Positions 11,533-46,426 of a stretch of DNA of 64,000 nt are shown here, piece after piece; the stretch's first letter is position 1; every line of letters begins with the position of its first letter. A program made the position numbers and the translations under genes. The notes beneath the pieces were generated by a model. That model was not told where the DNA came from, searched no databases, and saw nothing but the letters and a program-made list of their open reading frames with translations. The DNA lies in IMG/VR virus record IMGVR_UViG_3300044700_000691, positions 1 through 64,000 of that record; one strand, written 5' to 3'.

Positions 11533-11958
11533 ATGAACAGGATTAAAAGATTTAGTGAGTATCTAGTAGAGGCAGTAGCCTTAGATCAATTGGCTACTCA
11601 ATTAGGTGGTACCGTGGAACCTATCGAGGGGGTAACAGACTGGTCAGCAGTTAGAGGTTATCTAGATATTAACCGTGAAAAACTTAAGACCAGCTTAGAA
11701 AAGGCAACTGGAGATAAGATAACTGCCATGGTAGTTATTAAGGTTACTGATATCTATGCTGAAGACAAGAGGGACGGGGTAACTCCTGATCCAGACTGGT
11801 TAGGTGCAGATCCAATTGTAGACGATGCAACTCCAGATCTACAAGAAATGGTTAAGGTAGTTATTTCAGCAATACAGCAGAGTCTTGCTAAATCCGATAC
11901 AGCAACCCTAGCTAAGTTTAGTACAGCAGGTAAAGGCATCAAAACAAGTAGATATTAA
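11533..11958 (+). CDS. putative capsid-internal protein (leader MNRIKRFSEYLVE), 141 aa
   Basis: start moved from 11389 to the ATG after the late promoter; capsid-targeting-sequence (CTS)-like leader. Confidence 0.75.
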   Translation: MNRIKRFSEYLVEAVALDQLATQLGGTVEPIEGVTDWSAVRGYLDINREKLKTSLEKATGDKITAMVVIKVTDIYAEDKRDGVTPDPDWLGADPIVDDATPDLQEMVKVVISAIQQSLAKSDTATLAKFSTAGKGIKTSRY

Positions 11959-11961
11959 TCT

Positions 11962-12612
11962 ATGAAACATATCAGACTATACAAAGATTTTATTACCGAA
12001 GAGGTCCAGTCTGGTGTTGTGCACTGCAGTGGTAAAAGCTGTAACTGGAGTTGGAATCTAGCGGATGGCTTGGATGGCGGCGAAACCAATCCCTATCTAT
12101 GTCACAAGTGCTGGCATGACAATACCCCTGCTATTACCGAATCTGCGGATCCTTTCTGGACCCAATATGTTAGACTTGTTGATCTAGGTATGATTGATCT
12201 AGAGGATTGGAGCAAGATTAAAGATGATGTAGTATTGCTAGTTAAGGAGCGGTTAGCCAGTCACTACCCTAATTTAGATGTAGAAAAACTGGCATTTGAC
12301 GAAATCAGGATCCACCAGCAGGGTAAAGGCGGGCGCGATCCTTATTATAGTGTCTATATTGATAAGGGCGTTAACTATAGTTATAAGGTATGGAATTGCA
12401 GATTGGTAATTCGTTTTCAAAAGGCAGCCGGTCGACTTGATAGTAGTCAGCTTATTACGGTACCTGACTATTTCTGGGAAAGACCAATTGGTGGGTATCA
12501 ATGGATACCAAGCACGGTTGCACAGAGTAGGTGGATAGCAGACGAAATTATCAAGTGGATGGACAAGGTCTTTGTACCATTTATCGGTGTTGAAATAGAA
12601 GAAACCAACTAA
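11962..12612 (+). CDS. putative capsid-internal protein with N-terminal Cys cluster (zinc ribbon)
   Basis: leader MKHIRLYKDFITE; CxxxxC...CxxC; RLVDLGM motif. Confidence 0.75.
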   Translation: MKHIRLYKDFITEEVQSGVVHCSGKSCNWSWNLADGLDGGETNPYLCHKCWHDNTPAITESADPFWTQYVRLVDLGMIDLEDWSKIKDDVVLLVKERLASHYPNLDVEKLAFDEIRIHQQGKGGRDPYYSVYIDKGVNYSYKVWNCRLVIRFQKAAGRLDSSQLITVPDYFWERPIGGYQWIPSTVAQSRWIADEIIKWMDKVFVPFIGVEIEETN

Positions 12613-12614
12613 CT

Positions 12615-13187
12615 ATGAAATATTTAAAACCATACCGCCTATTTGAATCCGCTGAAGAGATTGCCGCAGCTAGGCGCATGTTGGCACTAGGCTTAATAGA
12701 ACCCGAGGATTTTAAACAGAAATTACAGGAGCTTGGTTTGGATAAACAGTATCGTAGCGAATTTGTTGCCGCCCTCAAGACCCTATTTGCGGATCTTGGG
12801 CTAGAGTGGCGGGATTGGGCAACAGGCCGCCAGGCGGATAATGGTACAGTCGTGCTTAAAATTAGCCCAGCTGATGCAGCCGAAATTCTCTTTACTGCTG
12901 ACTTGCCTAAGGGCTTAAGCCCTGCTCAAGAGGCACGCTATGCAAAGATAAAAGGGGAGCTGCAGCAGTGGCAGCGTCAAATGGAGATGGAGACCTCATT
13001 GAGCTCTAGGTTTGAATACTGGATTTTCCCAGGTTCTCTACGTAACTCTGGTCGAATTGGCCAACCAACCTCTAACCGTCAGGTTATATTCGATGGCTTA
13101 ACTGAGCCGGGTACAGCCCTGGCCAGATTTATGTACCAAGTTGCACTTGATGCCCATGGTCGTAGTTGGCGCTGGGGTAGGCGCTAG
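12615..13187 (+). CDS. putative capsid-internal protein
   Basis: leader MKYLKPYRLFE; RMLALGL motif. Confidence 0.75.
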   Translation: MKYLKPYRLFESAEEIAAARRMLALGLIEPEDFKQKLQELGLDKQYRSEFVAALKTLFADLGLEWRDWATGRQADNGTVVLKISPADAAEILFTADLPKGLSPAQEARYAKIKGELQQWQRQMEMETSLSSRFEYWIFPGSLRNSGRIGQPTSNRQVIFDGLTEPGTALARFMYQVALDAHGRSWRWGRR

Positions 13188-13305: not shown

Positions 13306-13941
13306 CTAGGCTAGGTCTCCACCAATAAGATCCGCCTCAACCTGGGCTGGGGTCTTATCAAAATTTTCTCGCCAGTAATCAACTATAGTTTGGCCCTCAG
13401 TTGCCTGTTTATTATAGGTTACTTCACCATGTCCCCAAACTGCATCCTTTTCATAACCAAGATATTTCATTAGTTTAAAAGCTGCAACCACCTGGATAGG
13501 TAAAACATCAGCATCGTCTTTAGCAATAACCTCTACGCCCTGAGCAGTTTGATTCTGCAAGTCATGTGGGGCATCCTTTTGATCACTATGACCAGCATGC
13601 CAGCCAACTACACCATCAGGTAAGGTTTGAAATACTTTACCATCACGATCAATAACCCACTGGACTCCAAGTCCGCGATCATTTAAAACATTAACTACAT
13701 CCTCAGCACGGCCTCGACCTGCAGTATGGTGTACAACAAAATATTTGTCGTCTTTTAGCGGGTCCATTCGTGGCTGGGTCGCTTGGGCTGAAATATCTTC
13801 AATTTCTTGTTTAAACTCCTGTTTAAATTCCGAATCTGAGACTTCGGCAGAGTCTGCTCCCGGTTCGCCAGTAAAGGCAGACTTTACCTTATCTGCGATA
13901 TCGCCTAACCAGCTTTCAAATAATTTAATGTGTTGTGGCAT
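13306..13941 (-). CDS. N-acetylmuramoyl-L-alanine amidase (Amidase_2) with CTS-like leader
   Basis: VVHHTAG, WVIDRDG, GWHAG, GVEV and WGHGE motifs; leader MPQHIKLFE. Confidence 0.85.
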   Translation of the reverse strand: MPQHIKLFESWLGDIADKVKSAFTGEPGADSAEVSDSEFKQEFKQEIEDISAQATQPRMDPLKDDKYFVVHHTAGRGRAEDVVNVLNDRGLGVQWVIDRDGKVFQTLPDGVVGWHAGHSDQKDAPHDLQNQTAQGVEVIAKDDADVLPIQVVAAFKLMKYLGYEKDAVWGHGEVTYNKQATEGQTIVDYWRENFDKTPAQVEADLIGGDLA

Positions 13942-14347: not shown

Positions 14348-15892
14348 ATGGAAATTAAGAAATACCACGATTGGTTATTTGAAAAACAAAACCCAATTAG
14401 CGAGTGCGGTTGTGCAAGTCACTCATTTATTACCGAAAGTATTAGTATTGACCAGGTAATGGCCAATCACGAAGCAAATGCGATTCAACCAATTGACGAA
14501 GCCGGCGAGACATTTGGCCCGTTTGTTGCAGGCAAAGGCGGAAACTCTAAAGATATTTTATGTCTTTATGGATCAGGTTACTATTCAGTAGACCATACAA
14601 CCAAACCAAAGGTTGGCGAGCCTAAAACATTTAAAAACTCAGACAGATTTAAAGAAACTCTTGATAATATGATAGCTTTCCTTAAAGCGGAACCTGCTAA
14701 AACTTGGGTATCTAAAGTTATTATTAAATCTAGCGAATCAATTATTCCAAACTTTGATATGGAAGGCGGCACTGGCCAAAAGGCAACCGGTTGGTTATCT
14801 GAAAAGCGTAAAGAGAAAATTGCAGCATATGTTAGTGATGTACTTAAACCATTATTTCAGGCTGGAACTATTTCTAAATTACCAGAGGCTAGACTTATTT
14901 TTGAAGAGGCCAAAACCTTAACTGAACCGTCTGGCGGCTGGGATGATTATCGCACATGGATGAGAGAAGCTGACCCTGTAAAAAAGGCAGCAATGGCAAT
15001 TAATCTTGAATATACTAGACTTAAAAAGGGTTATGACGCAGATCAAAAAACAACTGTTCAATTTATAGTAGTTCAAGATGCAGGAATAGGTCAATGCGCA
15101 TTAGGTATGAAAATTTATGTTAACTATGATGATACAACAATTGGTCATTCATGTGACCATGCAAATTTTGAAATAACCGTGAATGGAATTCCTCTAAAAA
15201 CTTCATATGGTGGAAAGACTGAGTCGGGCTATATTCCAGCCGGTCTGCCTTTTGCAAGTATGAGTAATTCAAAAGGGCCAACCGATGAATTATACAAAGT
15301 CTATAGCGGTGCGGTTAACGGCGGTGTTAGACGAAACGTATTTCGTTTAGATGATGCTGCCCTAGTTAAGAAAATTGCATCAGCCGGCGACGGTAAGACA
15401 CTGGTAGTTAGAGCTAGGTGTATAAAAAATGGTGATGGCTATAGTGTACCTAAAGGGTTAGCTTGTCATACAGATGCACCTCACGTATGGATATATGGAT
15501 CTGACGGTAATATTACAAAAGGTTTCCCAACTTATCCTAAAACTGATAATGGCGAACTTGCTAAAACTGACCTATGCGGAAATAACCTAGGAGTTCAAAA
15601 TACAGCGGTTCCAAAAAGTGCAGACGCTAAAGGAGCAGTTACTACTGCAACCGGGCCTACCTTAACTGGAGTTAAAGTAGCATTTGCAGCAAATAAAGTT
15701 GGAACACTTAATTCTGACCAAGCTCTTCAAAATTACCTAACAAACGGCACAGTTGCTAAACAAAAAGATAATACCTATCTAGTAAATAAGGTATTTACAA
15801 TAAATAATGTTCAATACAATAAAGGTGATGTTATTAATAAAATTTTACCTAAGGGAACAGTTATAGCTCAGCCAGCTGTCCCTAACAGTTAA
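14348..15892 (+). CDS. putative virion/ejected protein, 514 aa, with a possible OmpA-like peptidoglycan-binding region
   Basis: leader MEIKKYHDWLFE; IKSSES..PN...LSEKR pattern; several Cys. Confidence 0.7.
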   Translation: MEIKKYHDWLFEKQNPISECGCASHSFITESISIDQVMANHEANAIQPIDEAGETFGPFVAGKGGNSKDILCLYGSGYYSVDHTTKPKVGEPKTFKNSDRFKETLDNMIAFLKAEPAKTWVSKVIIKSSESIIPNFDMEGGTGQKATGWLSEKRKEKIAAYVSDVLKPLFQAGTISKLPEARLIFEEAKTLTEPSGGWDDYRTWMREADPVKKAAMAINLEYTRLKKGYDADQKTTVQFIVVQDAGIGQCALGMKIYVNYDDTTIGHSCDHANFEITVNGIPLKTSYGGKTESGYIPAGLPFASMSNSKGPTDELYKVYSGAVNGGVRRNVFRLDDAALVKKIASAGDGKTLVVRARCIKNGDGYSVPKGLACHTDAPHVWIYGSDGNITKGFPTYPKTDNGELAKTDLCGNNLGVQNTAVPKSADAKGAVTTATGPTLTGVKVAFAANKVGTLNSDQALQNYLTNGTVAKQKDNTYLVNKVFTINNVQYNKGDVINKILPKGTVIAQPAVPNS

Positions 15893-18378: not shown

Positions 18379-18936
18379 ATGAAAGCACTAAAATTTAAAC
18401 AGTTTCTTAACGAAGGGGTCTTTGATTCTCCAGAAGAAGAAAAGATAAAGGCCAGACTAGGTGAATTAGGCCTGCGCCCTAAGCGTGAAATTGATTTAGA
18501 CGATCCAACTTCTTGGCAAGGTCTACACTCAAATTGTTGTGGAGCTCAATTTAATTTAAACTACGGCGTTTGTTCAGACTGCGGCGATTTTGCAACTCCA
18601 GAAGAAGCTGACGCCGATTATGAAGGAGGCGACGTATATGAAAGTGAAGAGGATTCTGCTAAAATTGAAGACCGCCTTAGAGACCTAGGGCTTGCGCCTA
18701 AGGAAGAATTTGACGAGCGTTGGGATAATATGATAGACGAGTGGGGTAGCGATCCAGAAATTGACCAAGCAATCCAAGCTCTTAGAAGAAAAACTAGCGA
18801 AATTATCAATAAGCATATTGATTTTGGCGATCCGGAGGACGAAGTAGAGTGGGACCAACGCCGTGAATGGATGAACGAACAAGGTGTTGACGATCTTGGC
18901 GAACTAGAATTTATGATTGTACAAGGTAACTACTAA
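18379..18936 (+). CDS. putative capsid-internal acidic protein with internal duplication and Cys cluster
   Basis: leader MKALKFKQFLNE; RLGELGLRPK and RLRDLGLAPK repeats; SNCCGA...CSDCGD. Confidence 0.8.
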   Translation: MKALKFKQFLNEGVFDSPEEEKIKARLGELGLRPKREIDLDDPTSWQGLHSNCCGAQFNLNYGVCSDCGDFATPEEADADYEGGDVYESEEDSAKIEDRLRDLGLAPKEEFDERWDNMIDEWGSDPEIDQAIQALRRKTSEIINKHIDFGDPEDEVEWDQRREWMNEQGVDDLGELEFMIVQGNY

Positions 18937-19222: not shown

Positions 19223-19852
19223 ATGTCATACTTTAAAAAATTTGGTGCATTTATCAATGAAGACGAATCTTCCGAAGAGAAATTGGCCAAGCTTGCTAGA
19301 TTAAAGGAACTTGGTTTACTTGATACAGATCAATATAGACAAGATTCCAAGAATATCCGAAAGGATGCAATGCTTTCGGCTACGTCTAGAGGCGAACACG
19401 CAGGAACAGCGCTTCCGGAAATTAGAGAAGTTTTAGATTCACCAGAAGCTCAATTACTAAAGGCCAAAGGTCTTGCAGTAGTTTCAAGCCCAACTCAACT
19501 CTTAAATGGTACCCTTGTTTGGGCAAAACCGGGTTATACAAGATCAACTGGTTGGGGTATAGGATTTTTTCCCGGTCCAAGTAAAATTCGCAGAATGACT
19601 CCTAAAGGAATTAATATTGGAGTATGGGGCCGCCGTATAGGTTCAATGGATATCGAAATGAAAGCTATCCCAAAATCAGCGTACTCGAATGAAACTGAAT
19701 TTTATAGAGTTGCAATGAAATGGGCAGCTGAACATATTGATTGGGATCAATTGGAAATGGCTGAAAGAAAGAGTCGTGAAGATTGGAGATATTATGTAAA
19801 AGGAAAAACTAAACAAGGTTATTTTAACGATGAGAATAATAGAATCATTTAA
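19223..19852 (+). CDS. putative capsid-internal protein
   Basis: leader MSYFKKFGAFINE; RLKELGL motif. Confidence 0.8.
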   Translation: MSYFKKFGAFINEDESSEEKLAKLARLKELGLLDTDQYRQDSKNIRKDAMLSATSRGEHAGTALPEIREVLDSPEAQLLKAKGLAVVSSPTQLLNGTLVWAKPGYTRSTGWGIGFFPGPSKIRRMTPKGINIGVWGRRIGSMDIEMKAIPKSAYSNETEFYRVAMKWAAEHIDWDQLEMAERKSREDWRYYVKGKTKQGYFNDENNRII

Positions 19853-21461
19853 TAGCTGGAAACGTTCGAGCAGACTCTTAACTGAGAATGTTCAGGCAGC
19901 TAAGCAATATATGTTAAAACGTTTTGCACAAGCAAAAGGAATTGAAGTTTCTGAAATTGCGCCAGAGGATCAGGCTAGAGTTTTTGCAAATGAAGATTAT
20001 AAAAAAGTTCTTCAGTTAATTCAGCCACTTCCTGGATATGCTTCAACCTTTGTTAAATTTAAATTTGACCACCGAGTTTCATTTGAACAGTTGCAGCAAT
20101 TGCTTGATAAAATCAAAGCAAATTCCCAATTTCTTGGAGAATTATCAATTCCACTTATTGAGTTTCCAAATCAAGATAAAGTAAATGGAGTTCCTGCATT
20201 TGAAGCCTTAATGGATGAGTTTAGTCAAATTGAAACTCGCCGTAAATCAAAATGGATTCTTAACGAATTGCCAGGAAATTTACGTAGAGCTGCTAGAGAA
20301 TTACCAAAAGAAGACTTACAGAGACTATTTAATGCAGCAACAATCATGAATGATTTAGGTCAAGAAGTTAAAGTGCGTCTCTTAAAGAAAGCAAAAGCTT
20401 TTACTAATCCAATTGATTTTATTGTTTATGCTGAAAGCTATGTTAAAGGTTACCTAAATTCTGATGTTCAAAGTAAAATTGATAAATTAGAAGAATTAGA
20501 ACCAGAAGGTTCTGTAATTTATGCAGATGATCGCTACTTAATGTTAAGTGCCCGAACTGAAAAAGCTCAAAAGGAATTATGTTCAGTTGCAAGTTGGTGT
20601 ATTAACAGAGGAAGTTTTAATAATAGTTCATATGGCGGAGGCGCTGTGCAAATTAATACATTTGATTTTGGTTTACCGCCAACTGATCCACGTCACCTAA
20701 TTGGAACAACTATTTCCTATGATGGTAAAGTTACATATAGTCATGATATTAATGATAAAAGTGTTAAACAAACTGACGATATTACTAAACACTTTAACCA
20801 GTTTGGCTATCCAGAAAAATTAATCAAAACCTTAATTACAGTATTTCCAATTGAAGCAATGATTAAAAAGGTAATTACTGAATTAAACCTTGATAAAAAA
20901 TCTCCAATCCAAGTATTGGAATCAGTTATTAAGGCAAGTTATAAAGTAAATCCAGAAGACGACCAAGAATCTGCTAGAGTAATTCTTAATATCCTAATGG
21001 AAAGAATTGCACCAGCAGTTAAGGAAGAAGAGATTGTTACTCTATATATGAAGTTTGGTGTAATGTCAATTTTCTCTGCTAAACTATTTAATATGTTACT
21101 TCCAAATATTAATCCTCAAACCAAAGCTGAGGTTATTCAAAATGCAAAGGCAATTTTAGATGAGATTAAAGGTTATGCCAGTACTGGATTATTTAAATAT
21201 CCACAATTACTAAATGCCGTTAAGAGTGAACCTAAAATTTTAGAACTACTTGGTGAAAGTATTGTAAATGAGTTCTATGCAGCTGAACCTGCAATTAAAG
21301 AGCCAGTAACTAAACCTAAAGTAACACCAAGACCAGGGCCAATCCCAACTAAAAAACCATCAGTTAAGCCTGAACCAAGCGCAACTGCTGAAGATGTTAT
21401 TAAGAGGTTTGAAATGGAATTAAAAAAATTAGGTACTACACCAAAGGAATTCCTTAAGTAA
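19830..21461 (+). CDS. large putative capsid-internal protein, 543 aa (helical, with WC motif)
   Basis: leader MRIIESFNSW...LLTE; ELCSVASWCI; Pro/Lys-rich linker. Confidence 0.8.
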   Translation: MRIIESFNSWKRSSRLLTENVQAAKQYMLKRFAQAKGIEVSEIAPEDQARVFANEDYKKVLQLIQPLPGYASTFVKFKFDHRVSFEQLQQLLDKIKANSQFLGELSIPLIEFPNQDKVNGVPAFEALMDEFSQIETRRKSKWILNELPGNLRRAARELPKEDLQRLFNAATIMNDLGQEVKVRLLKKAKAFTNPIDFIVYAESYVKGYLNSDVQSKIDKLEELEPEGSVIYADDRYLMLSARTEKAQKELCSVASWCINRGSFNNSSYGGGAVQINTFDFGLPPTDPRHLIGTTISYDGKVTYSHDINDKSVKQTDDITKHFNQFGYPEKLIKTLITVFPIEAMIKKVITELNLDKKSPIQVLESVIKASYKVNPEDDQESARVILNILMERIAPAVKEEEIVTLYMKFGVMSIFSAKLFNMLLPNINPQTKAEVIQNAKAILDEIKGYASTGLFKYPQLLNAVKSEPKILELLGESIVNEFYAAEPAIKEPVTKPKVTPRPGPIPTKKPSVKPEPSATAEDVIKRFEMELKKLGTTPKEFLK

Positions 21462-21462: not shown

Positions 21463-22752
21463 ATGAAAACAATAAAACAATTTTTACAAGAGGCAAGTTT
21501 ACAGGGAAATCCTGGCACGCCTGGCGAATATTTAAAAGGAGTTGAACGCCGAGCAATGCAAGATGTTCAAGGTACTGAGCAGAGACTGGGCAGAGAAATG
21601 GGTCAGTTTATGCAGTTGGTTGGACAAGTTCAGCAAATGCAAACCCCTCAGGTTAAGGCTCAATTAGAAAAACTTGCAGAATATATTATTTTGCAACAGT
21701 ATGGTTCAATCTTGGGTCAAACTAAATTAATTATTAAATTTCCAAAAGAGGGAGAAATCCAACAAATGATGGAACCAGTTGAAATGGAAACACCAGCTGA
21801 CCAAAAGGAAATTACTGATGCAGGTACAATTGCCGCAATTAATAAACGTAAAATAGGCAATGCAATTATGCAGGGCGAAGCTAAAAATGCAAAACTTATG
21901 TTAGCTTTACCTGAAACTATGGATGGAATGATTAAGATTTTTGGACCAGCTGGTGCTGCAAAAATGATAGATCTTCTTAAGAAAATTACAGATATTGCAT
22001 CTGCACTTGATTGGAGAATTCCAATGGAAGTTCAAAAGCAGATGTGGGAACGAGATAAGAGTGGATTTAGTGGTTCAGTTGATGTTGATTGGAAACCAAT
22101 TAAGAATGACGAGCAAACTGCAGACGAAATCATTAAGTCCTTAGAGAGTGGAGATATCCAAACTCCAGAAATCGAAGATTCGCTTAATGAAATGGAACCT
22201 ACCATTACTGCACTTGGTACAGATTTTGCAATGTTATTACATGAAACAATTAAAGGTATTTACAAATTAATTGGTGCTGCTGCAATTCCCGAAGATGAAG
22301 AAGAGGCAGAAAAGGTGATTGCAAGTACTGGAACACTTAGCGATGAATTAGAAGATTTAAGATATGGGCCATATTTAGCGGCAGATCTTAGAGATTTTAT
22401 AAACAGATTTACAGATAACGTTGAGGTTGAAAATATTAGAGAACATGTATTTGGCAAACTAATGCAAATGGAATCTACGCAATTTTTACAGTTAATGAAA
22501 GAAATCTTTAGTGAAGATGCTGGAGCAACTGCAAAAATAAAAGATATTATTCTAGAAATTCAACAAGAGATAAAGGATTGGGAAAGAGGCCAATTTGATG
22601 AAGAGGTTCCAGATTTTGGAATGGCTCCTACTCAAAACGAACCAGCTGACCTATCACAATTAAGTAAAAGAGAAATTCAGGAATTACTGGATGCTGCTCT
22701 AGATGCAGGCGATTACGCTGAGGTTGGAAAACTTGCAAAATATTTAGATTAA
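21463..22752 (+). CDS. putative capsid-internal protein, 429 aa, with HE motif and C-terminal UVR-like helix pair
   Basis: leader MKTIKQFLQE (close to T4 MKTYQEFIAE); LLHETIKG; LDAALDAGDYAEVGKL. Confidence 0.8.
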   Translation: MKTIKQFLQEASLQGNPGTPGEYLKGVERRAMQDVQGTEQRLGREMGQFMQLVGQVQQMQTPQVKAQLEKLAEYIILQQYGSILGQTKLIIKFPKEGEIQQMMEPVEMETPADQKEITDAGTIAAINKRKIGNAIMQGEAKNAKLMLALPETMDGMIKIFGPAGAAKMIDLLKKITDIASALDWRIPMEVQKQMWERDKSGFSGSVDVDWKPIKNDEQTADEIIKSLESGDIQTPEIEDSLNEMEPTITALGTDFAMLLHETIKGIYKLIGAAAIPEDEEEAEKVIASTGTLSDELEDLRYGPYLAADLRDFINRFTDNVEVENIREHVFGKLMQMESTQFLQLMKEIFSEDAGATAKIKDIILEIQQEIKDWERGQFDEEVPDFGMAPTQNEPADLSQLSKREIQELLDAALDAGDYAEVGKLAKYLD

Positions 22753-22753: not shown

Positions 22754-23389
22754 ATGAAAATTAAAAGATTTAATCAATTTATAAATGAAAGCGACGGTTA
22801 TCTAGAAGAACCAGCCGATTCAGCATTTAACGAAATCTTAGAACAAATTGCAGATGGTATGGATAGCTGGAGCGGTTACCGGGCATATCTAGATGAAAAT
22901 AATAGCACGCTACATATTGATCAGGATTGGAATATTGATGACCTAAACTTTCAGGGCGAAGAACCTAGGGTTTATGCAAGTTATGCAGTTAGACTTAGGC
23001 TTGCTTTTCAAGATGATGAATCCGAATTATCACCAGAATTAGTTAGACTTTGGAAATTGGGCTTAGCCCCAGTTACAGATTTAATTAAAGGATTTAACCA
23101 TTCATGGGCATTTCAAATTGATTCAAAGGACGTTTCGCAATTAGACATTGCCGATGGCGATTTAAGTAGTTATGAATTTATATCAATTGAAGATCTTACT
23201 GGCGGTTCCATGAATAATTTAGATGATATTGACTCTTTTTGTAGTGAACTTGTAGAAACTCTTAACGATTGGCGAGATGAAAATACTTGGATGTTACACG
23301 AGAGAGTTCAAGAAGAATTAGACGAAATCTCTGGACCAAATGAAGACGATGAAGAAGACGACGACGAAAAAGATCCTGATAAAGATTAA
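22754..23389 (+). CDS. very acidic putative capsid-internal protein
   Basis: leader MKIKRFNQFINE; D/E-rich; RLWKLGL motif. Confidence 0.8.
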   Translation: MKIKRFNQFINESDGYLEEPADSAFNEILEQIADGMDSWSGYRAYLDENNSTLHIDQDWNIDDLNFQGEEPRVYASYAVRLRLAFQDDESELSPELVRLWKLGLAPVTDLIKGFNHSWAFQIDSKDVSQLDIADGDLSSYEFISIEDLTGGSMNNLDDIDSFCSELVETLNDWRDENTWMLHERVQEELDEISGPNEDDEEDDDEKDPDKD

Positions 23390-23393: not shown

Positions 23394-23478
23394 GTTGAGG
23401 TTTAATACCTCACTTTAGGACCGGGACTAGTTCACGGGTTGGGCAGAGAAAAGTTCGCTACTATCTCTGCCCTTTTTT
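23394..23478 (+). ncRNA. candidate structured RNA complementary to 23S rRNA H69-H70
   Basis: three hairpins; TTAGGACCG, TAGTT-C-ACGG and TTCGCTAC are reverse complements of the conserved 23S segment CCGUAACUAUAACGGUCCUAAGGUAGCGAA. Confidence 0.5.
23441..23478 (+). terminator. intrinsic terminator with a 14-nt loop
   Basis: GGGCAGAGA/TCTCTGCCC plus T6. Confidence 0.75.
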
Positions 23479-24703: not shown

Positions 24704-25555
24704 ATGCAAAACATGCAAGTTAAACAATTTACTGACTGGATAACCGAAGCAATCGCACCAGCAAAGCCATATACAAAAAAACTGTCTGAGCTGAATCCTC
24801 AACGTAAATACATAGGTGATACTTATAATACAGACCTGTTTTTAAGGTTTAAGCACCTAGCCTCAATTCGTGATAAACACGGAAAAAGAATTGGAGTTGA
24901 GAAATGGTTTGAAATTGCGCAAATCGAAGACAAAGGATTTTATTCAGCCGCGTTAGCCGATCAAATGGGCCAGCCTGATGTTAGAGAATTATGGAGAGAC
25001 ATGATGGGTCGTAATGCAAGCAAAGTCAAGGGCCAAGTTAATTTTAAAGATCCATTTAAGGGAAACGAAGATACTGAAGATGAAGTTAGAGACCTAAGCC
25101 TTAGTGAAAGTATTGAAGAACCTATTACAATGTCAGCTCAACTGGATCCAAGCTGGACTCTAGTTATTACCTATCCAAATGATAGTTTATACAATACTAC
25201 TAAACCATACTTTGAAAAACTTGGAATTGCATTTGCCAATTTAGAAAATCAAACTATCTATTTTGATGGATCAGAGGTAAGCGAATCATATTTTACAAAG
25301 GATCATATGCTTGCGGTTGAGGCTCATGAAATTGGTCACTCAATTGCAAATCATCAAGGCGAACCTTACTATTCAACAAGACAGGAGCAGGAGGCAGATT
25401 GGCTTGGTATTAATCTATTAATTCAGCACAATAAAACAAAGGCTTCTAATCTATTAGCCGAAAGATTTAACCAACAATACAAAATGGATTACACAGAATT
25501 ATCTGATTCCGAGAAGCTTACTGAGTTCCTTGAAGATTACTTATCAGATAAATAA
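24704..25555 (+). CDS. putative capsid-internal protein with C-terminal zinc metallopeptidase domain
   Basis: leader MQVKQFTDWITE; AHEIGH...EQEAD. Confidence 0.75.
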   Translation: MQNMQVKQFTDWITEAIAPAKPYTKKLSELNPQRKYIGDTYNTDLFLRFKHLASIRDKHGKRIGVEKWFEIAQIEDKGFYSAALADQMGQPDVRELWRDMMGRNASKVKGQVNFKDPFKGNEDTEDEVRDLSLSESIEEPITMSAQLDPSWTLVITYPNDSLYNTTKPYFEKLGIAFANLENQTIYFDGSEVSESYFTKDHMLAVEAHEIGHSIANHQGEPYYSTRQEQEADWLGINLLIQHNKTKASNLLAERFNQQYKMDYTELSDSEKLTEFLEDYLSDK

Positions 25556-30881: not shown

Positions 30882-31480
30882 CGTAGTTCTTCTATCTTGT
30901 CAATCATCCAATCGACGTTGACTGGTTTATAATCTGTTATACACGCACAAGCTGACATGGTTCCCGCTAATGGGTGGATGTGCCTGTGAGAGTGTCCATA
31001 TAGGTGGTATGCTCCACGATATTTGCCATTCCATTCATAAAGAGGATAGTGAAATAGCACAAATCTTTTAAAACCCCAATCGCTATCGTCTTTAATCATA
31101 ATTTCTTTGTAGTTTGTAAATTCTACAATATCCATTACTTCTCTTAAATTATAGAGCCAGGCTTGATCTATGTGAAGATCATGGTTACCAATAATCCAGT
31201 GGACTTTTCCAGGAAGTTTTCCAAATTTTCCTAGGTTTTCACGAATGTGTTTAAATTTAGTTCGCTCCATTGCAAGATCACCTAAGAAAAAAACGTGATC
31301 GTCTTCGCCTACTGTCTCATGCCAGTTTTTGGCAATGGTTTGGTCGTGCTCTTTAATATCAGCAAAGTTGTGTAATCCTTCTTCGAATCGTAAGACATTT
31401 CCATGTCCTATATGTAAATCGCTAATGAACCAAGTGGTGGCTCTGTCAAATGTGTTTTCTGCACTAAATATTTGTTCCAT
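30851..31480 (-). CDS. calcineurin-like metallophosphoesterase
   Basis: SDLHIGH, LGD, GNHD, HYP, GHSH. Confidence 0.9.
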   Translation of the reverse strand: MEQIFSAENTFDRATTWFISDLHIGHGNVLRFEEGLHNFADIKEHDQTIAKNWHETVGEDDHVFFLGDLAMERTKFKHIRENLGKFGKLPGKVHWIIGNHDLHIDQAWLYNLREVMDIVEFTNYKEIMIKDDSDWGFKRFVLFHYPLYEWNGKYRGAYHLYGHSHRHIHPLAGTMSACACITDYKPVNVDWMIDKIEELRCKLTTQLSE

Positions 31481-32559: not shown

Positions 32560-33117
32560 TTATTTATCGAAACCTAATTTCTTTAGCTCTGCAATAGTTT
32601 CCTTGGCACTAGTATGTAAAATGCCAGTTCCTCCAGCTGCAATCCATGCATCTAATTTCTTTGGAGTATCATCAATCAAGATATCGCTTGGGCCAGTTGC
32701 AAATTCAAATTTGTTACTATAAAAAATAGTCCTTTCTTTACCGGTCCAGTCCTCTAGTTTTGTAATATATGGAAAGTCCCAGTTTAGATTGCGCTTAAGC
32801 CATTTTGCTTTACCTGTAATTGAATTAGGATCAAGCGATGGTGAAGACAGGATAGTTGGGTTAAACTTTCGAATAAATGTCCAAAGGTCAATACCATCAG
32901 TCATCCATTCCATGCCGGCCCAAAATGGTTCGCCGGCTTTTCCAACCAGTTTCCAACTTGCATTTTTTGAATATTCCTTTTGAAATTCAGCTATTGTCAT
33001 TCCAGCCTCCTTTTCAAACTGAGAATCCCAATCTGAAAGTACTCCATCCATATCGCAAAATATTCGCGCTGTCTGGACACTCTCATTAAATTGTGTGTAT
33101 GGTTTAATGTGTTGCAT
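32560..33117 (-). CDS. HAD-family 5'(3')-deoxyribonucleotidase with CTS-like leader
   Basis: FCDMDGVL, ILSSP, K..W, ILIDD; leader MQHIKPYTQFNE. Confidence 0.85.
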   Translation of the reverse strand: MQHIKPYTQFNESVQTARIFCDMDGVLSDWDSQFEKEAGMTIAEFQKEYSKNASWKLVGKAGEPFWAGMEWMTDGIDLWTFIRKFNPTILSSPSLDPNSITGKAKWLKRNLNWDFPYITKLEDWTGKERTIFYSNKFEFATGPSDILIDDTPKKLDAWIAAGGTGILHTSAKETIAELKKLGFDK

Positions 33118-33990: not shown

Positions 33991-34413
33991 ATGATTTACA
34001 ATTTCAAAGATTTCGTTACTAAGGTTGACGAGAACGTAAACTCTAATGAGTTTTTAAACAAATTCGGTTTAACTGAAGAAGAAGATGCGGCAGAAGCTGA
34101 TGCTCCAGTTGAAGAAGAGCCAACTGAAGAAGCTCCTGAAGAAGGTGCTGATTTAGAAGCTTTCAAAAAAGAACACCTTGATGTAATGTTCAATGAACTT
34201 TCATCTGATGATTTCGATTCATTCTATTCTAGCGAATTCAAAGAGTGGAAAGAAATGGAAGATGGTGAAGAAAAGGAAGCTAAAAAAGAAGAGATTCTTA
34301 ATAAAATTAAGGATATGTTCCAATTAGGCGAAGAAGAGAAAGAAGAAGAAGCTCCTGAAGAAGGTGAAGAACCTGCTGAAGAACCAGCTGCTGAGGAAAC
34401 TCCAGAAGCATAA
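33991..34413 (+). CDS. extremely Glu-rich late protein, 140 aa (core/scaffold or DNA-mimic candidate)
   Basis: start moved to the ATG after the late promoter; leader MIYNFKDFVTKVDE; EEAPEEG repeats. Confidence 0.75.
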   Translation: MIYNFKDFVTKVDENVNSNEFLNKFGLTEEEDAAEADAPVEEEPTEEAPEEGADLEAFKKEHLDVMFNELSSDDFDSFYSSEFKEWKEMEDGEEKEAKKEEILNKIKDMFQLGEEEKEEEAPEEGEEPAEEPAAEETPEA

Positions 34414-41149: not shown

Positions 41150-41632
41150 CTATTCGATAGTTTCAATCAATCGTTGAGCAATTATCTGCTGAGAACGCGA
41201 TAATTTAGTAATTGCCTCTTGTATTGGGATAAATCCAGCCCAATCTACCTCCTCGGCCTGTAGTTGTTCTTTAGGTACCTTCGGCGAAGCAAGGCCAATT
41301 TGTTCAAGGCTCTCAATGCGTACGTCAAAATAAGCGCAGCGACTGTGAGGAATACCGCGACGGTAAAATACAAAATATTTCTCATGTTTATCAATTAGTT
41401 CTGGATCTACCGTAATCCCGGTCTCTTCCCTTGTCTCACGAATTGCGCAAGTTAAAAGATCTTCACCATCTTCGATTCCACCTTTAGGAATGCCAAATGG
41501 TTGGTTCTTCCAACTTGCATCAGAAGGATGAATTAATAAAAGTTTTCCTTCCCAGATAATAGCCAAGCCGGCTGCTCGAATTTCAAGCTGCTTTTCGCTC
41601 TCTGCTAAATAATCTGTGAATGTAAAAATCAT
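41150..41632 (-). CDS. NUDIX hydrolase with CTS-like leader
   Basis: PKGGIEDGEDLLTCAIRETREETGI Nudix box; leader MIFTFTDYLAE. Confidence 0.9.
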   Translation of the reverse strand: MIFTFTDYLAESEKQLEIRAAGLAIIWEGKLLLIHPSDASWKNQPFGIPKGGIEDGEDLLTCAIRETREETGITVDPELIDKHEKYFVFYRRGIPHSRCAYFDVRIESLEQIGLASPKVPKEQLQAEEVDWAGFIPIQEAITKLSRSQQIIAQRLIETIE

Positions 41633-41826: not shown

Positions 41827-42432
41827 TTAAAAATCAGTGTCAATTGACTTTGAAACTGGCCCAGTTGAAAAGTTAAGCGTCCATGAAAAGGTGTCTGAGT
41901 CGTTAGCTCCTTCAAAAGTATCGAAAAGACTATCATCAGCTCTGCCAGTCATCCATCCAGAAACTTCAGTTAAATTTAAATTCATTTTCTTTGAAAGAGA
42001 TACCATTGTAGCATCACTTGCATATTTACCATTTGCTGCAACATCCTTGGTTAATTGTGCAAGAGTCGTAGTAAGATCATCCAATGTAGGTTTGCAGTCC
42101 AATTCCCATTGCTGTTCTAGTGCGGCCCAAGCCGTTTTTTCATTATCGTTCCACGTGCTTTTGAATTTATTCCAAAATGGATTTGCTTCAACAAACATAG
42201 CGATTAACCAATCTTGTAGTTTCTTAAAACCTGCGTCTAGCTTAGCGGTTAAAGCCTCTTTTTCTTTGGCAATAGCCTCTGCAGTAGGACCTGCTGGCGT
42301 ATTATTTGCGGGCTCTGCCTTTTTTGAAGCCACGGTACTGCTTTTTTGACCAGATGAGCTTGCGGAAGAAGCTTGTCCAAATCTTCCTGTTTGTTCGACT
42401 AAAAAGTCTGAAAATCTTTTAATATTTTTCAT
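41827..42432 (-). CDS. putative capsid-internal protein
   Basis: leader MKNIKRFSDFLVE. Confidence 0.8.
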   Translation of the reverse strand: MKNIKRFSDFLVEQTGRFGQASSASSSGQKSSTVASKKAEPANNTPAGPTAEAIAKEKEALTAKLDAGFKKLQDWLIAMFVEANPFWNKFKSTWNDNEKTAWAALEQQWELDCKPTLDDLTTTLAQLTKDVAANGKYASDATMVSLSKKMNLNLTEVSGWMTGRADDSLFDTFEGANDSDTFSWTLNFSTGPVSKSIDTDF

Positions 42433-42453: not shown

Positions 42454-43854
42454 TTATTTAATTGGAGAGGCTGTTATGGCAGATTTAATAATTGTAAGCA
42501 AACCATCATCAAATTTTCCAGCAGCTGTTCCCTTTACTACAGATTCAAAATCTTTAAATCCTTTTGATTCACTATACGTTTGACCGTGTTTAAATCCTGA
42601 GAATTTTTTAATAGCGGCAAACATATTTTCATACGACCCTGCACTATTTTTATTCATATTGGTTTTAAAGTAAGTTTTAACTTTATCTATTGTAGAAACA
42701 TCTGGGGTTCCCCAAGTTGTCTTGTCAGATACAACTACTCCTGCAAAAATCTTTAACACTTGATCTTCAGTTGTTATATTAGTTCCATCAAATCCAGCAG
42801 TGGCGGCTGCTGAGGCTGTAGCAGCAGTTGGATCAACAATTGCGCCGGCTGCTAAATCCGAGATTATGAATGGAGCATAATATTCCGCACTTTCTGGATC
42901 TTTCATAAATTCTAGTGAATTTAACTTAATTTTTCCAGCGTTTAATCCTAATACCACTACGGCATGCGCCATTTTAGAGTAAAGATCTTGTGTTAATTCA
43001 TTAACGTTGACTTTAGAAAAATTTGACTGGTCGAATTTGGCAGCTTTGGCAAACAGATTTATTAAAGCGGCCTGAAGTGGTTCCGAATAAATTAGGTTCT
43101 GCCCAGCAGCGCCTGGCTCAGCTTTAGCCATTCCATCTGGTAGTTTAGAAATAAATTTCCAAAATATTGGAACAATATCACCGCTTGTTGTAACTGCAAC
43201 CCGTGCCTTTCCAATCTTCTTAGTGACTTTCTTTATGTAAGTTGAGTACAGACCAATATCATTATAATACCATTTGTATGCTGGACCGTCTCCATCTAAG
43301 AATGACGCTGCCGTAAATACAGTCGCAGGTTTTGTATCAGCTGCGATTTTCTTATCGTCGGCCGGCTTACCTGTGCCTGGCTCCTTAAAATACTTTTGAA
43401 ATGAACCATCTGCACCCATTAAATAAGTCATTCTGTTATCAATACCAGAGGCTATTTTTTGATTTGCTGGAATAGCTTGAGTATTAATTGTATCAGGATA
43501 AAAAAGATAGATCCATCCTGTAAATTCTCCTAGATCTTTTCCAATTATTCTATTTTTTTGAGTTGATACATTAGCTCTAATAATACCTACTTCATGCGTT
43601 GGGTCAGATCCTTTAATTGCAGTTAGGACCTGCTGAGCATCACCGTCCTTAGCATTATTAATTGTATTAATTAACTCCTTAACATCTCCCAATAATGGAT
43701 TTTTAGCTGGCCAGCTAAATTGGTATTGCCATTTTATTCTAATGCTACCTTCGCCAGCTGGTAAAGTGATAGGCTGCGCAAGCAGCTTAAACTTAGTTTC
43801 AGTTTCAGTAGCAGTTTGCTCAAATAGAGCAGTTATGTTTTTTATGGTTTTCAT
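42454..43854 (-). CDS. putative virion/ejected protein, 466 aa
   Basis: leader MKTIKNITALFE; late operon. Confidence 0.8.
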   Translation of the reverse strand: MKTIKNITALFEQTATETETKFKLLAQPITLPAGEGSIRIKWQYQFSWPAKNPLLGDVKELINTINNAKDGDAQQVLTAIKGSDPTHEVGIIRANVSTQKNRIIGKDLGEFTGWIYLFYPDTINTQAIPANQKIASGIDNRMTYLMGADGSFQKYFKEPGTGKPADDKKIAADTKPATVFTAASFLDGDGPAYKWYYNDIGLYSTYIKKVTKKIGKARVAVTTSGDIVPIFWKFISKLPDGMAKAEPGAAGQNLIYSEPLQAALINLFAKAAKFDQSNFSKVNVNELTQDLYSKMAHAVVVLGLNAGKIKLNSLEFMKDPESAEYYAPFIISDLAAGAIVDPTAATASAAATAGFDGTNITTEDQVLKIFAGVVVSDKTTWGTPDVSTIDKVKTYFKTNMNKNSAGSYENMFAAIKKFSGFKHGQTYSESKGFKDFESVVKGTAAGKFDDGLLTIIKSAITASPIK

Positions 43855-43858
43855 TATA

Positions 43859-46426
43859 TTAAAACATTTTAAGTAAGTCGCTAGCAGTCACCGAACCTCC
43901 AAAGAAATTTGGTCTATACGATGGATCGGCATCCAGTTTTTCAAATTCAGATTTGATTAATTGTGCTTCTCCAGGAGATGGATAAAAACTAATTGAGCCA
44001 GTTGTTGCTACATTGCCGGCTGTACGTTTATAATTATTTTCATACTCTTTAAGGGCACTCTTAAGTTTAGATTTAATTGATTCATATTCCATGTCCTGTG
44101 TCATTACCGCAGCTAACATATACCATAGTCCGCCGTGTTGCCAGTCGGTTCCGACTCTTTCTGAAATTACTTCTTGAATAGTGGCATCGGCTGGTAATTC
44201 GGTCATCATACCTGCATCTGAAATTGGAGAAGATATTCCCATTTGTTTTAGGGTAGCATCGACTGCTTCTTGATTAGCAATAGTAGCTTCACTACTAACT
44301 CCAGCTGCAACAAAATCTTGTTTTGGGCCGTTTTTAACTAGTGCACTATCCTTAGATGGAACGGTTGCGGCTAGCGCAAGTTCGTCTATTGCTTTATTTA
44401 CGTGACTTTGACAAATATCAACATAGCTAAGAGGACCTACTATTGCATTACCTCTTTTTGCTTTTTCTAATTCTTGTGATATTTCATCTGCTGCCGTAGT
44501 AGGTGTAGCATCTTCTGCCTCTAACAAAAACTGAGATCGACTTAGGATAAATTTAGTAGATTCCTTTTTTAAACCTAACGTACCCAATGCCTCAATACCT
44601 CCCATATCGCCTTGACCTAACTCTGCAATTGGACATCTAAGCGGAGCACCAATTACGTTTTTAGCAATAATTAGTTTATTTCGCATAACTCTACTTTTTC
44701 TAAGAGCTTGTGACCAGGTTCCTCCAACTTTTGCTAAATCGTCAAACCTTTTAATTGCACTAGATCCAGCTTTTGCAATATCAGCATATACCTCTGGATT
44801 TTTTGCAAAAAGTCTATACATTCCAACTACACCTGGGCCAGCTTCTTCTAATTTGGCTAGCGCCGCGGGGTTAGACAAAATTCCATTAAAAAATTTACTT
44901 AATTTGGCTGGATCATCTGAAATCTCTGCAACCAATCTAGCACTAAAGTTTGCACCTTTTTTAGTTGATATTTCAGCTGCATTGCCAGTTAATCTAATTA
45001 AATCATCGGCTGGTAAATCGCTAATACGTTTCATTCCAGCAAATAGCGCCTCAGCTTTACGACCCTCCATCCAAGCAGATTTAAGCTTTTCAATTTGGCT
45101 AAGGTCGCTTGCTGTAAGAGGAACACCGTCAACTTTTTTAATTTCTTTCCATACAGAAATATATTCATCCCAACCTTTTTCTAAGAATTTGTCTAGATCC
45201 TTTCCTCCTGTTTTAAGAAGATCATCACTAATTTTAAGATTTGAATTTATAACGTCAATTAGTCTGCCGCCTTTAACAAAGCGCCCTGCTCCAGGTAATC
45301 CCTTTTCAATACGAGTTTGAAGAATTCCTTCAATACGTTTAACTTCTGCCATATTACCTGCGGCTTTTGCTGCAGTTAATTCAGACATTTTAGTTACTAC
45401 TCCAGCATCATTAACTACATCTGCTCCGATCTTAGTAACAATATCACTTCCAGTATCTGCTACTTTACTGGCATCTCCACTCTTGATTGCAGCTGTAATA
45501 TCATCTGAACCCTTAGTTGTAAGAGCTGCCATATCATCAATTGCAGAATCTAGATTTTTGGTAATTGGCGTAACTGCCGTGTCTAGCCATTTTCCAAGCT
45601 TTTTACCAAGCCCGCCGAATAACATACTTACTGGCCATGATCTCAATAGTGCTTCAATGCCTCGACCTACTCCTTTTGCAAGGTTTATAAAAAATGTAAT
45701 AACTGGCTTTGCTCCAGAAAATATCTGTAAGAATTTAGCAAGTGTTGTAGGATCTTCTTTGGCAAGAGCCTTAACAATGCCTGCGTCAGCTTTACCTGTT
45801 TTAAATGCAACTTCAGCTAAATTGTTTATTTTCTTAAAGCCTTTTGCTAATTTTAATGCTTTGGCTGCATCACCAATTCCCGGTAGAGCTGCTGCAATTA
45901 CACTAATTAATGCTGATCCGTATTGACCTTCTAGTAAGTAAATTACCGCGTTTAGTCCATCTGCAACAATATCAATAGGAAAGCCAAAATATGAAGCTGG
46001 AATAAATCCAATAATATCTAATAATAAGTGTACGATACCTAGCGGCGAACCATTTTCGGTTAGGGCGTTCCAAATTGATCTAAGAGTATCAAAAAAGTCC
46101 TCGTTAACTGAATAGTAATGTTCAATTACTGAATCAAGGTTAAAATTAGATTCTGTAAATAGGGTAACACCAGTCGTTCCCATTGCATATAAAATATGCT
46201 CTAATTTAGAATTTTCAGAAAATCCAGACTGGCTAAGAGCAGCATCGTATCTTTGCGAATTTTCAATAAATTCATCTGATACTGATTCAGGCAAGACTGG
46301 TTTAATTGTGTCCAGCATTTGCATTAGGTCTGGACCAACTTCATTTAAGAAGTCAAATAGTGGATTAGAGTTATCAGATTCGTTAATTACAAATTGATCT
46401 CTACTTAAAATATATTTTGATGCCAT
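43859..46426 (-). CDS. large putative ejected protein with pre-toxin TG-like hydrophobic hairpin, 855 aa
   Basis: HLLLDIIGFIP...ADGLNAVIYLLEGQY..ALIS..AALPGIGDAAK; leader KYILSRDQFVINE repeated internally as KFILSRSQFLLE. Confidence 0.75.
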   Translation of the reverse strand: MASKYILSRDQFVINESDNSNPLFDFLNEVGPDLMQMLDTIKPVLPESVSDEFIENSQRYDAALSQSGFSENSKLEHILYAMGTTGVTLFTESNFNLDSVIEHYYSVNEDFFDTLRSIWNALTENGSPLGIVHLLLDIIGFIPASYFGFPIDIVADGLNAVIYLLEGQYGSALISVIAAALPGIGDAAKALKLAKGFKKINNLAEVAFKTGKADAGIVKALAKEDPTTLAKFLQIFSGAKPVITFFINLAKGVGRGIEALLRSWPVSMLFGGLGKKLGKWLDTAVTPITKNLDSAIDDMAALTTKGSDDITAAIKSGDASKVADTGSDIVTKIGADVVNDAGVVTKMSELTAAKAAGNMAEVKRIEGILQTRIEKGLPGAGRFVKGGRLIDVINSNLKISDDLLKTGGKDLDKFLEKGWDEYISVWKEIKKVDGVPLTASDLSQIEKLKSAWMEGRKAEALFAGMKRISDLPADDLIRLTGNAAEISTKKGANFSARLVAEISDDPAKLSKFFNGILSNPAALAKLEEAGPGVVGMYRLFAKNPEVYADIAKAGSSAIKRFDDLAKVGGTWSQALRKSRVMRNKLIIAKNVIGAPLRCPIAELGQGDMGGIEALGTLGLKKESTKFILSRSQFLLEAEDATPTTAADEISQELEKAKRGNAIVGPLSYVDICQSHVNKAIDELALAATVPSKDSALVKNGPKQDFVAAGVSSEATIANQEAVDATLKQMGISSPISDAGMMTELPADATIQEVISERVGTDWQHGGLWYMLAAVMTQDMEYESIKSKLKSALKEYENNYKRTAGNVATTGSISFYPSPGEAQLIKSEFEKLDADPSYRPNFFGGSVTASDLLKMF

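Follow-up and report, generated by a model that had tools for sequence, protein, structure and literature searches.

An N-terminal tag matching the T4 capsid-targeting leader is shared by about 20 unrelated proteins of an uncultured phage of Bacteroidota

We found that an uncultured ~259-kb phage of Bacteroidota places the same ~12-residue N-terminal tag, matching the capsid-targeting leader of phage T4, on about 20 otherwise unrelated and apparently late proteins, including enzymes. The tag resembles a repeat unit of the phage's own protease-scaffold protein, suggesting how such tags may load cargo into the capsid. Packaging, cleavage and injection of the tagged proteins are inferred by analogy with T4, in the absence of virion proteomics or a cultured isolate.

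Results

We analyzed a 64,000-nucleotide stretch of the phage genome (IMGVR_UViG_3300044700_000691, positions 1 to 64,000; hereafter the window), in which an initial annotation had proposed 19 proteins with a T4-type leader. All 19 start positions open ORFs with the N-termini described, and eight fit the strict form of the proposed motif. The core [KR].[FY]..[FWY][ILV].E occurred 7 times in the 19,494 aa of 104 called genes, and all 7 hits started within the first 12 residues. As only about 6.4% of positions lie there, the probability of this arising by chance is about 4e-9. Using a leave-one-out 9-column matrix, 13 N-termini exceeded the 99th percentile of 1,300 internal windows, against about 1 expected. 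We then trained a Hidden Markov Model (HMM) only on leaders from relatives and from genome parts outside the window. This model scored 9 window N-termini above 10 bits (E<0.004, Z=104), and 11 scored above the best of 571 internal decoys. In relatives, N-terminal hits accounted for 4.1% of 1,494 ORFs, compared with 0.34% of internal windows. Overall, about 14 of the 19 proposed leaders hold, some only through ortholog conservation, whereas four or five could not be told from chance. The N-terminus of the DNA ligase also looked leader-like, but this segment is conserved in ligase relatives as part of the enzyme and is a false positive.

Nine leaders were strongly supported. The 141-aa protein at 11533..11958 (+), the first gene of an apparently late operon, fits the strict motif (leave-one-out matrix 14.1, HMM 10.8 bits) and has ATAAATA 32 nt upstream. 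It is followed in the operon by a 216-aa Cys-rich protein at 11962..12612 (+), which also fits the strict motif (HMM 13.1 bits) and carries an L..LG[LM] motif. The 514-aa protein at 14348..15892 (+), of unknown function, fits the strict motif (HMM 12.0 bits; promoter motif at -30) and is strain-specific, with no relative in IMG/VR apart from its own contig. The 185-aa acidic protein at 18379..18936 (+) scored 19.5 bits and has a promoter motif at -12 and LGL motifs at aa 27 and 100. The 209-aa basic protein at 19223..19852 (+), the first gene of an apparently late four-gene operon, fits the strict motif (HMM 11.4 bits; promoter motif at -28). The best independent HMM score, 27.5 bits (E 8.7e-9), belonged to a 211-aa very acidic protein at 22754..23389 (+). 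The 283-aa protein at 24704..25555 (+) fits the strict motif (HMM 10.7 bits; promoter motif at -35) and contains an HExxH motif, with weak M48/M78 and phrog_87 metalloprotease matches below the Pfam cut-offs. The 140-aa protein at 33991..34413 (+) is extremely acidic (36% Asp+Glu; HMM 10.2 bits; promoter motif at -30). Finally, the 201-aa protein at 41827..42432 (-), of unknown function, had the top leave-one-out matrix score (19.5), with an HMM score of 19.2 bits and a promoter motif at -25.

Seven further leaders were supported mainly by orthologs or by conservation of a variant. The 160-aa NUDIX hydrolase at 41150..41632 (-) has its domain at aa 20-143 (E 7.9e-15), and orthologs in relatives down to 48% ligase identity keep F-x-x-F-[ILV]-x-E while the other leader positions vary. 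In the family of the 466-aa basic protein at 42454..43854 (-), M1, K2 and E12 are invariant in 20 homologs (35-100% identity). The AF2 model of this protein (mean pLDDT 77) predicted aa 1-17 as a low-confidence detached helix, and no PDB fold match was found. This protein is missing from the 48%-identity relatives. The 855-aa conserved protein at 43859..46426 (-) has hydrophobic, membrane-helix-like segments and tandem N-terminal [IL]-N-E sites, with a promoter motif at -30; the [FL]-x-[IL]-N-E sites are conserved in orthologs of 17-68% identity. Interestingly, it contains an internal second copy of the leader at 44519..44554 (-) (aa 625-636; matrix 10.4), directly following an LGL motif. The position and motif of this copy are conserved, between variable linkers, in the four relatives that have the C-terminal domain. 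In the operon behind 19223, the 543-aa protein at 19830..21461 (+) has a borderline leader of the M-R-I-I-E-S-F type (HMM 7.8 bits, just above the best decoy at 6.8), and the 429-aa protein at 21463..22752 (+) has a shortened one (matrix 11.1, HMM 6.2 bits). The 185-aa 5'(3')-deoxyribonucleotidase (HAD) at 32560..33117 (-) matches phrog_2643 (E 1.2e-27) starting at aa 15; its leader is one residue short and its promoter motif lies at -11. The 211-aa N-acetylmuramoyl-L-alanine amidase at 13306..13941 (-) has an Amidase_2 domain at aa 66-175 (E 1.9e-11), ATAAATA 29 nt upstream, and a leader variant ending in Asp, in which K-L-[FY]-E-x-W-L-x-D is conserved in the orthologs listed at about 60-96% identity.

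Among the N-termini not distinguishable from chance were three proteins. The 190-aa protein at 12615..13187 (+) has a shortened, weak leader-like N-terminus and two LGL motifs and lies in the operon behind 11533. The 603-aa protein at 28318..30129 (+) fits only a loose form of the motif (matrix 4.3, HMM 1.7), although it has its own promoter motif at -30. The 358-aa protein at 31464..32540 (-) begins with GTG and has a promoter motif 27 nt upstream; its first seven residues match those of the 19830 protein apart from the start codon, but its leader has no statistical support.

Next, we asked whether the shared N-terminus could reflect paralogy. All-vs-all blastp found only one weak pair among the leader proteins (11533 and 22754, 31% over 52 aa from the N-terminus, E 0.005), and the Pfam domains differ between the proteins. 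Between conserved core genes, relatives carry different tagged genes. Although several leaders fit only loosely, chance resemblance or a paralogous family is contradicted by these results, by the confinement of the core to N-termini and by the independent HMM. Pfam, PHROGs and NCBIfam searches gave nothing for most cargo proteins or for the conserved neighbors of 368, 555 and 677 aa. The window had no near DNA match in the phage collection searched, where the 466-aa and 555-aa proteins also had no tblastn match. Flavobacterium phage MaF61 showed no leaders in 41 kb, and the 462-kb phage LR756500 showed only borderline ones in 42 kb.

We also examined the promoter context. ATAAATA occurs only 23 times in the window, and 17 of these lie 11-35 nt upstream of a start codon in the right orientation. 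Twelve of the 19 leader genes have their own copy and the other 7 follow directly in the same operons, whereas only 5 of 85 other genes have one, among them the baseplate wedge gene and others in the terminase/baseplate block. An isolated leader gene among replication genes outside the window also has the motif. Together with an encoded gp55-like late sigma factor, this is consistent with late expression from T4-like promoters. In principle, the shared N-terminus could serve something unrelated to the capsid, such as a signal tied to late translation with the phage's own ribosomal protein bS21, a membrane or localization helix, or a degron limiting the enzymes to a time window. A bS21 gene does sit among the leader genes, all of which appear to be late, and the leader is short and probably helical. 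However, 35 tail, baseplate and fibre genes lack the leader, as do the capsid and protease-scaffold genes. Moreover, conservation is at the peptide rather than the DNA level, with variable synonymous codons and a longest shared DNA word of 10 nt. As such a role also does not explain the match to T4 internal-protein leaders and to the scaffold repeat, we consider it very unlikely.

To test the similarity to T4, we scored 133 T4 ORFs with a matrix built from this window. T4 ipIII and ipII ranked first and second, with the residue-class pattern '+.a.Eah.E', and ipI ranked fifth. The best hit in the first 80 residues of gp23 ends at residue 65, which probably corresponds to its maturation cut. Notably, the four conserved positions are those that T4 mutagenesis assigned to targeting (two aromatics three apart, residues 4 and 7) and processing (an aliphatic residue and Glu, residues 8 and 10) (PMC9026906). 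[FY]-x-x-[FWY] and [ILV]-x-E are present in every strong leader, and the Glu falls at residue 11-15.

We then searched the genome beyond the window, walking about 90 kb along it. A Peptidase_S77 prohead protease of the T4 gp21 type was found on the same IMG/VR contig, in a segment designated L192 (L192:5316-7304; tblastn with T4 gp21, E 1.5e-9; PF03420, 46.9 bits against a cut-off of 27, E 2.9e-12). It lies next to a Gp23 major capsid protein (E 9.4e-48), the two together spanning L192:5316-8911. A 117-aa Lys-rich protein with a canonical leader sits directly after the capsid gene. The capsid protein itself has only weak candidate sites (V-L-E23, I-N-E53), not the full motif. T4 portal, tail and neck proteins gave no tblastn hit in the genome parts searched; about 76 kb of the genome was not seen. 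Of the 274-, 340- and 709-aa genes at the far end of the tail cluster, the first is the C-terminal part of a longer protein in relatives, and profile searches of PDB found nothing; these genes were rejected as protease, scaffold and capsid.

Interestingly, the protease is fused to a scaffold with about 11 tandem 14-residue repeats holding the leader core (Y-x-E-Y-[LVI]-A-E). The scaffold half has 7 exact and 2 near-exact copies of the core at 14-residue spacing, whereas the whole window proteome has 11, of which 9 are N-terminal. The DNA period is 42 bp. The repeats are conserved in 47 distinct relatives, and the motif does not vary among them, leaving no covariation with the leader to assess. 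The AF2 model of the protease-scaffold was unreliable (pLDDT 37.7).

Discussion

Taken together, these results support, with good though not full confidence, the shared N-terminus being a T4-type capsid-targeting sequence that doubles as a prohead-protease propeptide. In this model, the tagged proteins are made late together with the virion parts, and their first ~12 residues imitate one unit of the scaffold repeat (aromatic, x, x, aromatic, aliphatic, x, Glu). The two aromatic residues would let the tag join the scaffold core while the prohead forms, and the S77 protease would then cut after the Glu, the same kind of cut that would chop the scaffold into short peptides. The mature proteins would stay in the head with the DNA and would probably be delivered with it into the next cell. 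The proposed cargo includes small basic or acidic proteins, a conserved protein with membrane-type helices, a cell-wall amidase, a NUDIX hydrolase and a deoxyribonucleotidase.

The likeness between leader and scaffold could alternatively reflect only a shared protease site without any binding role. The tagged proteins would then enter the prohead by other means, or serve only in assembly and be degraded or lost. Consistent with this, the same heptad recurs in a scaffold that has to be destroyed, the 855-aa protein has tandem and internal copies like a polyprotein, and T4 gp23, gp21 and gp22 carry matrix hits that are not targeting tags. However, the two aromatic positions, which in T4 are needed for targeting and not for cutting (PMC9026906), are the best conserved positions here, and enzymes such as the NUDIX hydrolase, the nucleotidase and the amidase have no evident assembly role. 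In addition, the amidase family keeps the aromatics but has Asp at the cut position, a change that in T4 blocks cutting but not targeting. We therefore regard this alternative as unlikely.

The initial annotation had proposed that the leader is a portable tag grafted onto enzymes, and this interpretation was supported. The same nucleotidase and amidase families occur with canonical leaders, with variant leaders and with none; among nucleotidase homologs, the variants are [ILV]-x-E extensions. The catalytic domain starts 15-20 residues in for the NUDIX and nucleotidase proteins, and at residue 66 in the amidase. Of the enzymes it named, the amidase, NUDIX and HAD nucleotidase assignments were confirmed, the metallopeptidase is only a weak HExxH match, a nucleotidyltransferase with a loose leader lies outside the window, and no GNAT was found. 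The link to the scaffold repeats and the extension of the tagged set beyond the window had not been noted.

The closest known system is the capsid-targeting sequence of T4 internal head proteins, with which the tag shares its length of about 10-13 residues, its four key positions, otherwise unrelated and fast-evolving carriers in variable loci, a T4-like ATAAATA motif upstream of the transcription units, an S77 protease in the genome and a small basic protein among the cargo. The phage is nevertheless very distant from T4, with a capsid protein about 25% identical to gp23. About 20 tagged proteins were found in the ~170 kb seen, roughly 9% of the genes, against three internal proteins in T4, and the cargo includes recognizable enzymes. 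Furthermore, protease and scaffold are one polypeptide and the tag corresponds to a scaffold repeat unit, whereas T4 gp22 showed only one modest hit. In giant phages phiKZ, 201phi2-1 and SPN3US, many head-internal proteins are likewise processed after Glu by a gp21-related protease, their propeptides are thought to target them to the prohead, and some cargo has membrane helices and extra cleavage sites (PMC5694885). Those propeptides are mostly longer than 100 residues and their site is [S/A/G]-x-E, without the aromatic pair, and no shared short consensus tag has been described for them. Encapsulin cargo-loading peptides resemble the tag in working principle only, as short terminal peptides recruiting unrelated enzymes into an HK97-fold shell; they are usually C-terminal, bind the shell protein rather than a scaffold, are not removed, and deliver nothing to another cell. 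The ejection proteins of T7 (gp14, gp15, gp16) and P22 (gp7, gp16, gp20) are capsid-internal and ejected ahead of or with the DNA, and T7 gp16 probably carries a cell-wall hydrolase domain, as the tagged amidase would here. They have no common cleavable leader, and T7 and P22 have no prohead protease.

More tentatively, the tag may be literally one copy of the scaffold's own 14-residue repeat, so that cargo would be loaded by co-assembling with the repeat array and set free by the same cuts that dismantle the scaffold. If so, this is an ancient, portable mechanism shared from T4 to jumbo phages of Bacteroidota, which here would let roughly a tenth of the proteome, including nucleotide-metabolizing and cell-wall enzymes, enter the next host ready-made.

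How the T4 capsid-targeting sequence finds the prohead core has stayed open since the 1990s, it being known only that residues 4 and 7 matter and that internal proteins co-purify with the scaffold protein gp22 (PMC9026906). The heptad shared by tag and scaffold repeat in this phage gives a concrete binding model. Short portable loading tags are also useful for engineering phage capsids as protein carriers. Our findings further show that the tag is far older and more widespread than the T-even phages, that it can mark about 20 proteins in one genome, and that it can be read straight from sequence, which gives a way to predict from metagenomes the pre-made protein arsenal (likely counter-defence and take-over factors) of uncultured large phages.

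Genomic context of the leader-bearing phage

The IMG/VR contig IMGVR_UViG_3300044700_000691 is 216,815 bp long, and overlapping JGI contigs from freshwater samples put the genome at about 259 kb by our coordinate mapping. The large terminase is 31-37% identical to those of huge uncultured phages, Sphingomonas phage PAU and the Lak phages. The genes lack Shine-Dalgarno sequences, and some proteins carry Bacteroidota-style signal peptides. We also identified a phage-encoded ribosomal protein bS21 (Pfam PF01165, E 2.3e-12) at 41629-41823(-), between the 201-aa leader gene and the NUDIX leader gene. This places the phage among the bS21-encoding phages predicted to infect freshwater Bacteroidota (PMC9723584), although here bS21 lies on the same strand as its neighbours, unlike the arrangement described in that work. 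Parts of the genome outside the window (segments L095, L102, L103 and L185, about 121-153 kb) encode GroEL and GroES homologs, both ribonucleotide reductase subunits, gp32, a RecA/UvsX-like protein, DnaB, a split family-B DNA polymerase, thymidylate synthase and dCMP deaminase. In addition, small proteins with Bacteroidota-type signal peptides or membrane anchors are scattered among the leader genes, on the opposite strand or between them, at 15963-16364(-), 23477-23959(-) and 13977-14255(-) in the window and at 8775-9650 and 12233-12727 of L101, another segment outside the window.

A shared N-terminal leader on otherwise unrelated proteins

The initial annotation proposed that 19 proteins in the window share a T4-type leader, and all 19 positions open ORFs with the N-termini it described. 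To assess whether this sharing exceeds chance, we first searched for the core [KR].[FY]..[FWY][ILV].E, which occurs 7 times in 19,494 aa of 104 called genes, always within the first 12 residues, a distribution with a chance probability of about 4e-9 by our estimate. A leave-one-out matrix placed 13 N-termini above the 99th percentile of 1,300 internal windows. To avoid circularity, we then trained a Hidden Markov Model (HMM) only on leaders from relatives and from parts of the genome outside the window. Nine window N-termini scored above 10 bits, and 11 exceeded all 571 decoys. In 85 related loci, 4.1% of N-termini reached the threshold, compared with 0.34% of internal windows. Beyond the tag, the proteins are unrelated apart from one weak pair, 11533 and 22754. 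The DNA of the leaders shares no word longer than 10 nt and uses synonymous codons freely, indicating that selection acts on the peptide.

Support for the 19 proposed leaders was uneven. Those starting at 11533, 11962, 14348, 18379, 19223, 22754, 24704, 33991 and 42432(-) are strong. A second group is supported by conservation. Orthologs of the NUDIX protein at 41632(-), down to 48% ligase identity, keep F-x-x-F-[ILV]-x-E, and the 466-aa protein at 43854(-) has E12 invariant in 20 homologs. The 855-aa protein at 46426(-) has tandem N-terminal [IL]-N-E sites conserved at 17-68% identity, plus a conserved internal copy of the leader at aa 625-636. This group also includes 21463 and 19830, both borderline, the nucleotidase at 33117(-) and the amidase at 13941(-). 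In contrast, 12615, 28318 and 32540(-) are at chance level. The DNA ligase N-terminus, which looks leader-like, is a false positive, as the segment belongs to the conserved ligase fold. A 94-aa protein at 8874-9158(-), in the block of small minus-strand genes, scored 9.5 with the window matrix but -3.3 with the independent HMM and is probably a chance hit. The metallophosphatase at 30851-31480(-) has a 15-residue N-terminal extension absent from its orthologs in the 48%-identity relatives, but this extension is not leader-like.

Interestingly, a second short motif, roughly [RK]-L-x-[ED]-L-G-L (regex L..[LF]G[LM]), has 10 hits in the window proteome, eight of them in leader proteins and usually 10-25 residues after the leader Glu. 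It was found at 12615-13187, 18379-18936, 19223-19852, 22754-23389, 33991-34413 and 11962-12612, and at aa 614 of the 855-aa protein (43859-46426), where it directly precedes the internal leader copy. This motif may be a helix-extended-helix, SAP-like element.

Promoter context of the leader genes

Next, we examined the sequences upstream of the leader genes. ATAAATA occurs 23 times in the window, and 17 copies lie 11-35 nt upstream of a start codon in the right orientation. Twelve of these serve leader genes, and the other seven leader genes follow in the same operons. The remaining five copies precede other genes, among them the baseplate wedge gene and others in the terminase/baseplate block. 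Outside the window, a leader gene stranded between the ribonucleotide reductase and gp32 genes has its own ATAAATA at -26. The phage encodes two sigma-70-like factors (window 57618-58262(-) and 5390-6106(-)) as well as a gp55-like late sigma factor, the latter elsewhere in the genome (L095:9540-9959). Conversely, none of 35 tail, baseplate and fibre genes has the leader, indicating that the leader is not a general feature of late genes.

Comparison with the T4 capsid-targeting sequence

To test whether the leader is T4-type, we scored 133 T4 ORFs spanning 90 kb with the matrix built from this window. ipIII and ipII ranked first and second (12.4 each), inh fourth and ipI fifth; the probability of the top two arising by chance is about 1e-4 by our estimate. 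The best hit in the first 80 residues of gp23 ends at residue 65, which would correspond to its maturation cut. T4 nudE and the T4 ligase had no hit. In T4, the first 10 residues of IPIII suffice for packaging, with residues 4 and 7 governing targeting and residues 8 and 10 governing processing, and an Asp at position 10 blocks cutting but not targeting (PMC9026906). Those four positions are exactly the conserved ones here. Notably, the amidase family (13306-13941(-)) keeps the two aromatic residues and the aliphatic residue of the leader but has Asp in place of Glu throughout the listed orthologs of about 60-96% identity, suggesting a cargo that is loaded but not trimmed.

A fused prohead protease and scaffold with leader-like repeats

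Walking along the genome, we reached the head module at about 153-163 kb, contained in a segment designated L192. L192:7322-8911 is a Gp23-family capsid protein (Pfam E 9.4e-48). L192:5316-7304 (about 156.3-158.3 kb on the same contig as the window) encodes a 662-aa protein in which prohead protease and scaffold are fused, beginning with a Peptidase_S77 domain (T4 gp21 by tblastn E 1.5e-9; Pfam 46.9 bits) and continuing into a scaffold-like region. That region holds about 11 tandem 14-residue units with the consensus g-I-x-Y-s-E-Y-[LVI]-A-E-n-l-n-k. The heptad [FY]..[FWY][ILV].E occurs 7 times at exact 14-residue spacing, with two more copies that have His at one aromatic position, whereas in the whole window proteome it occurs 11 times, 9 of them at N-termini. 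The window-trained matrix gave five hits of 9.5-11.4 in the repeats, near or above the maximum of the internal background. Tandem Repeats Finder detected the 42-bp period at only 63-79% DNA identity. All 47 distinct protease-scaffold proteins of relatives (capsid identity 58-100%) keep the repeat, and full-length homologs exist in the 460-735 kb uncultured phages. Directly after the capsid gene lies a 117-aa Lys-rich repeat protein with a canonical leader, which resembles the small basic T4 internal proteins and is conserved in most relatives. We hypothesize that the tag works because it is one scaffold repeat, in which case the aromatic pair would pack into the repeat array. Alternatively, the two may share only the protease site.

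Portability and number of tagged proteins

We then asked how the leader is combined with recognizable domains. The NUDIX domain starts at aa 20, the nucleotidase match at aa 15 and the amidase domain at aa 66. Among 120 nucleotidase homologs, most have an N-terminal extension ending in [ILV]-x-E before the DxDGV motif; several of these are canonical leaders, and a few homologs have no extension at all. The deoxyribonucleotidases of the cultured T4-like marine and Baltic Sea phages Melnitz, HTVC008M and immuto also carry short extensions of this kind before the catalytic motif, and a capsid-loaded nucleotidase might therefore be widespread. More distant amidases carry canonical leaders, other extensions, or none. 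In relatives, the slots between conserved core genes hold different tagged genes, and the 514-aa cargo is unique to this contig.

In 217 distinct proteins from the ~170 kb of the genome that we read, 19-20 pass the thresholds. Six of them lie outside the window, at L099/L101 (three), L102 and L192 (one each), all designations of segments outside the window. Looser variants, including a nucleotidyltransferase at L101:14112-14876, come on top of that.

Possible roles of the tagged proteins

That diverse internal proteins share only a capsid-targeting sequence is established for T-even phages (PMC3012670, PMC9026906). We found no paper extending this concept to the present clade or noting a likeness to scaffold repeats, in a survey that covered few subscription journals. 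By analogy with T4 and the giant phages (PMC3012670, PMC5694885, PMC9026906), we infer that the tag brings the protein into the scaffold core, that the protease cuts after Glu, and that the mature proteins stay with the DNA and are ejected.

What the cargo may do is a matter of speculation. The amidase could help cross the cell wall, as the ejected T7 gp16 does, and the membrane-helix protein could form part of an ejection conduit. The basic and acidic small proteins resemble DNA-associated internal proteins or inhibitors, while the fold of the 466-aa protein is unknown. The NUDIX hydrolase and the deoxyribonucleotidase could act on nucleotides or nucleotide signals at the very start of infection.
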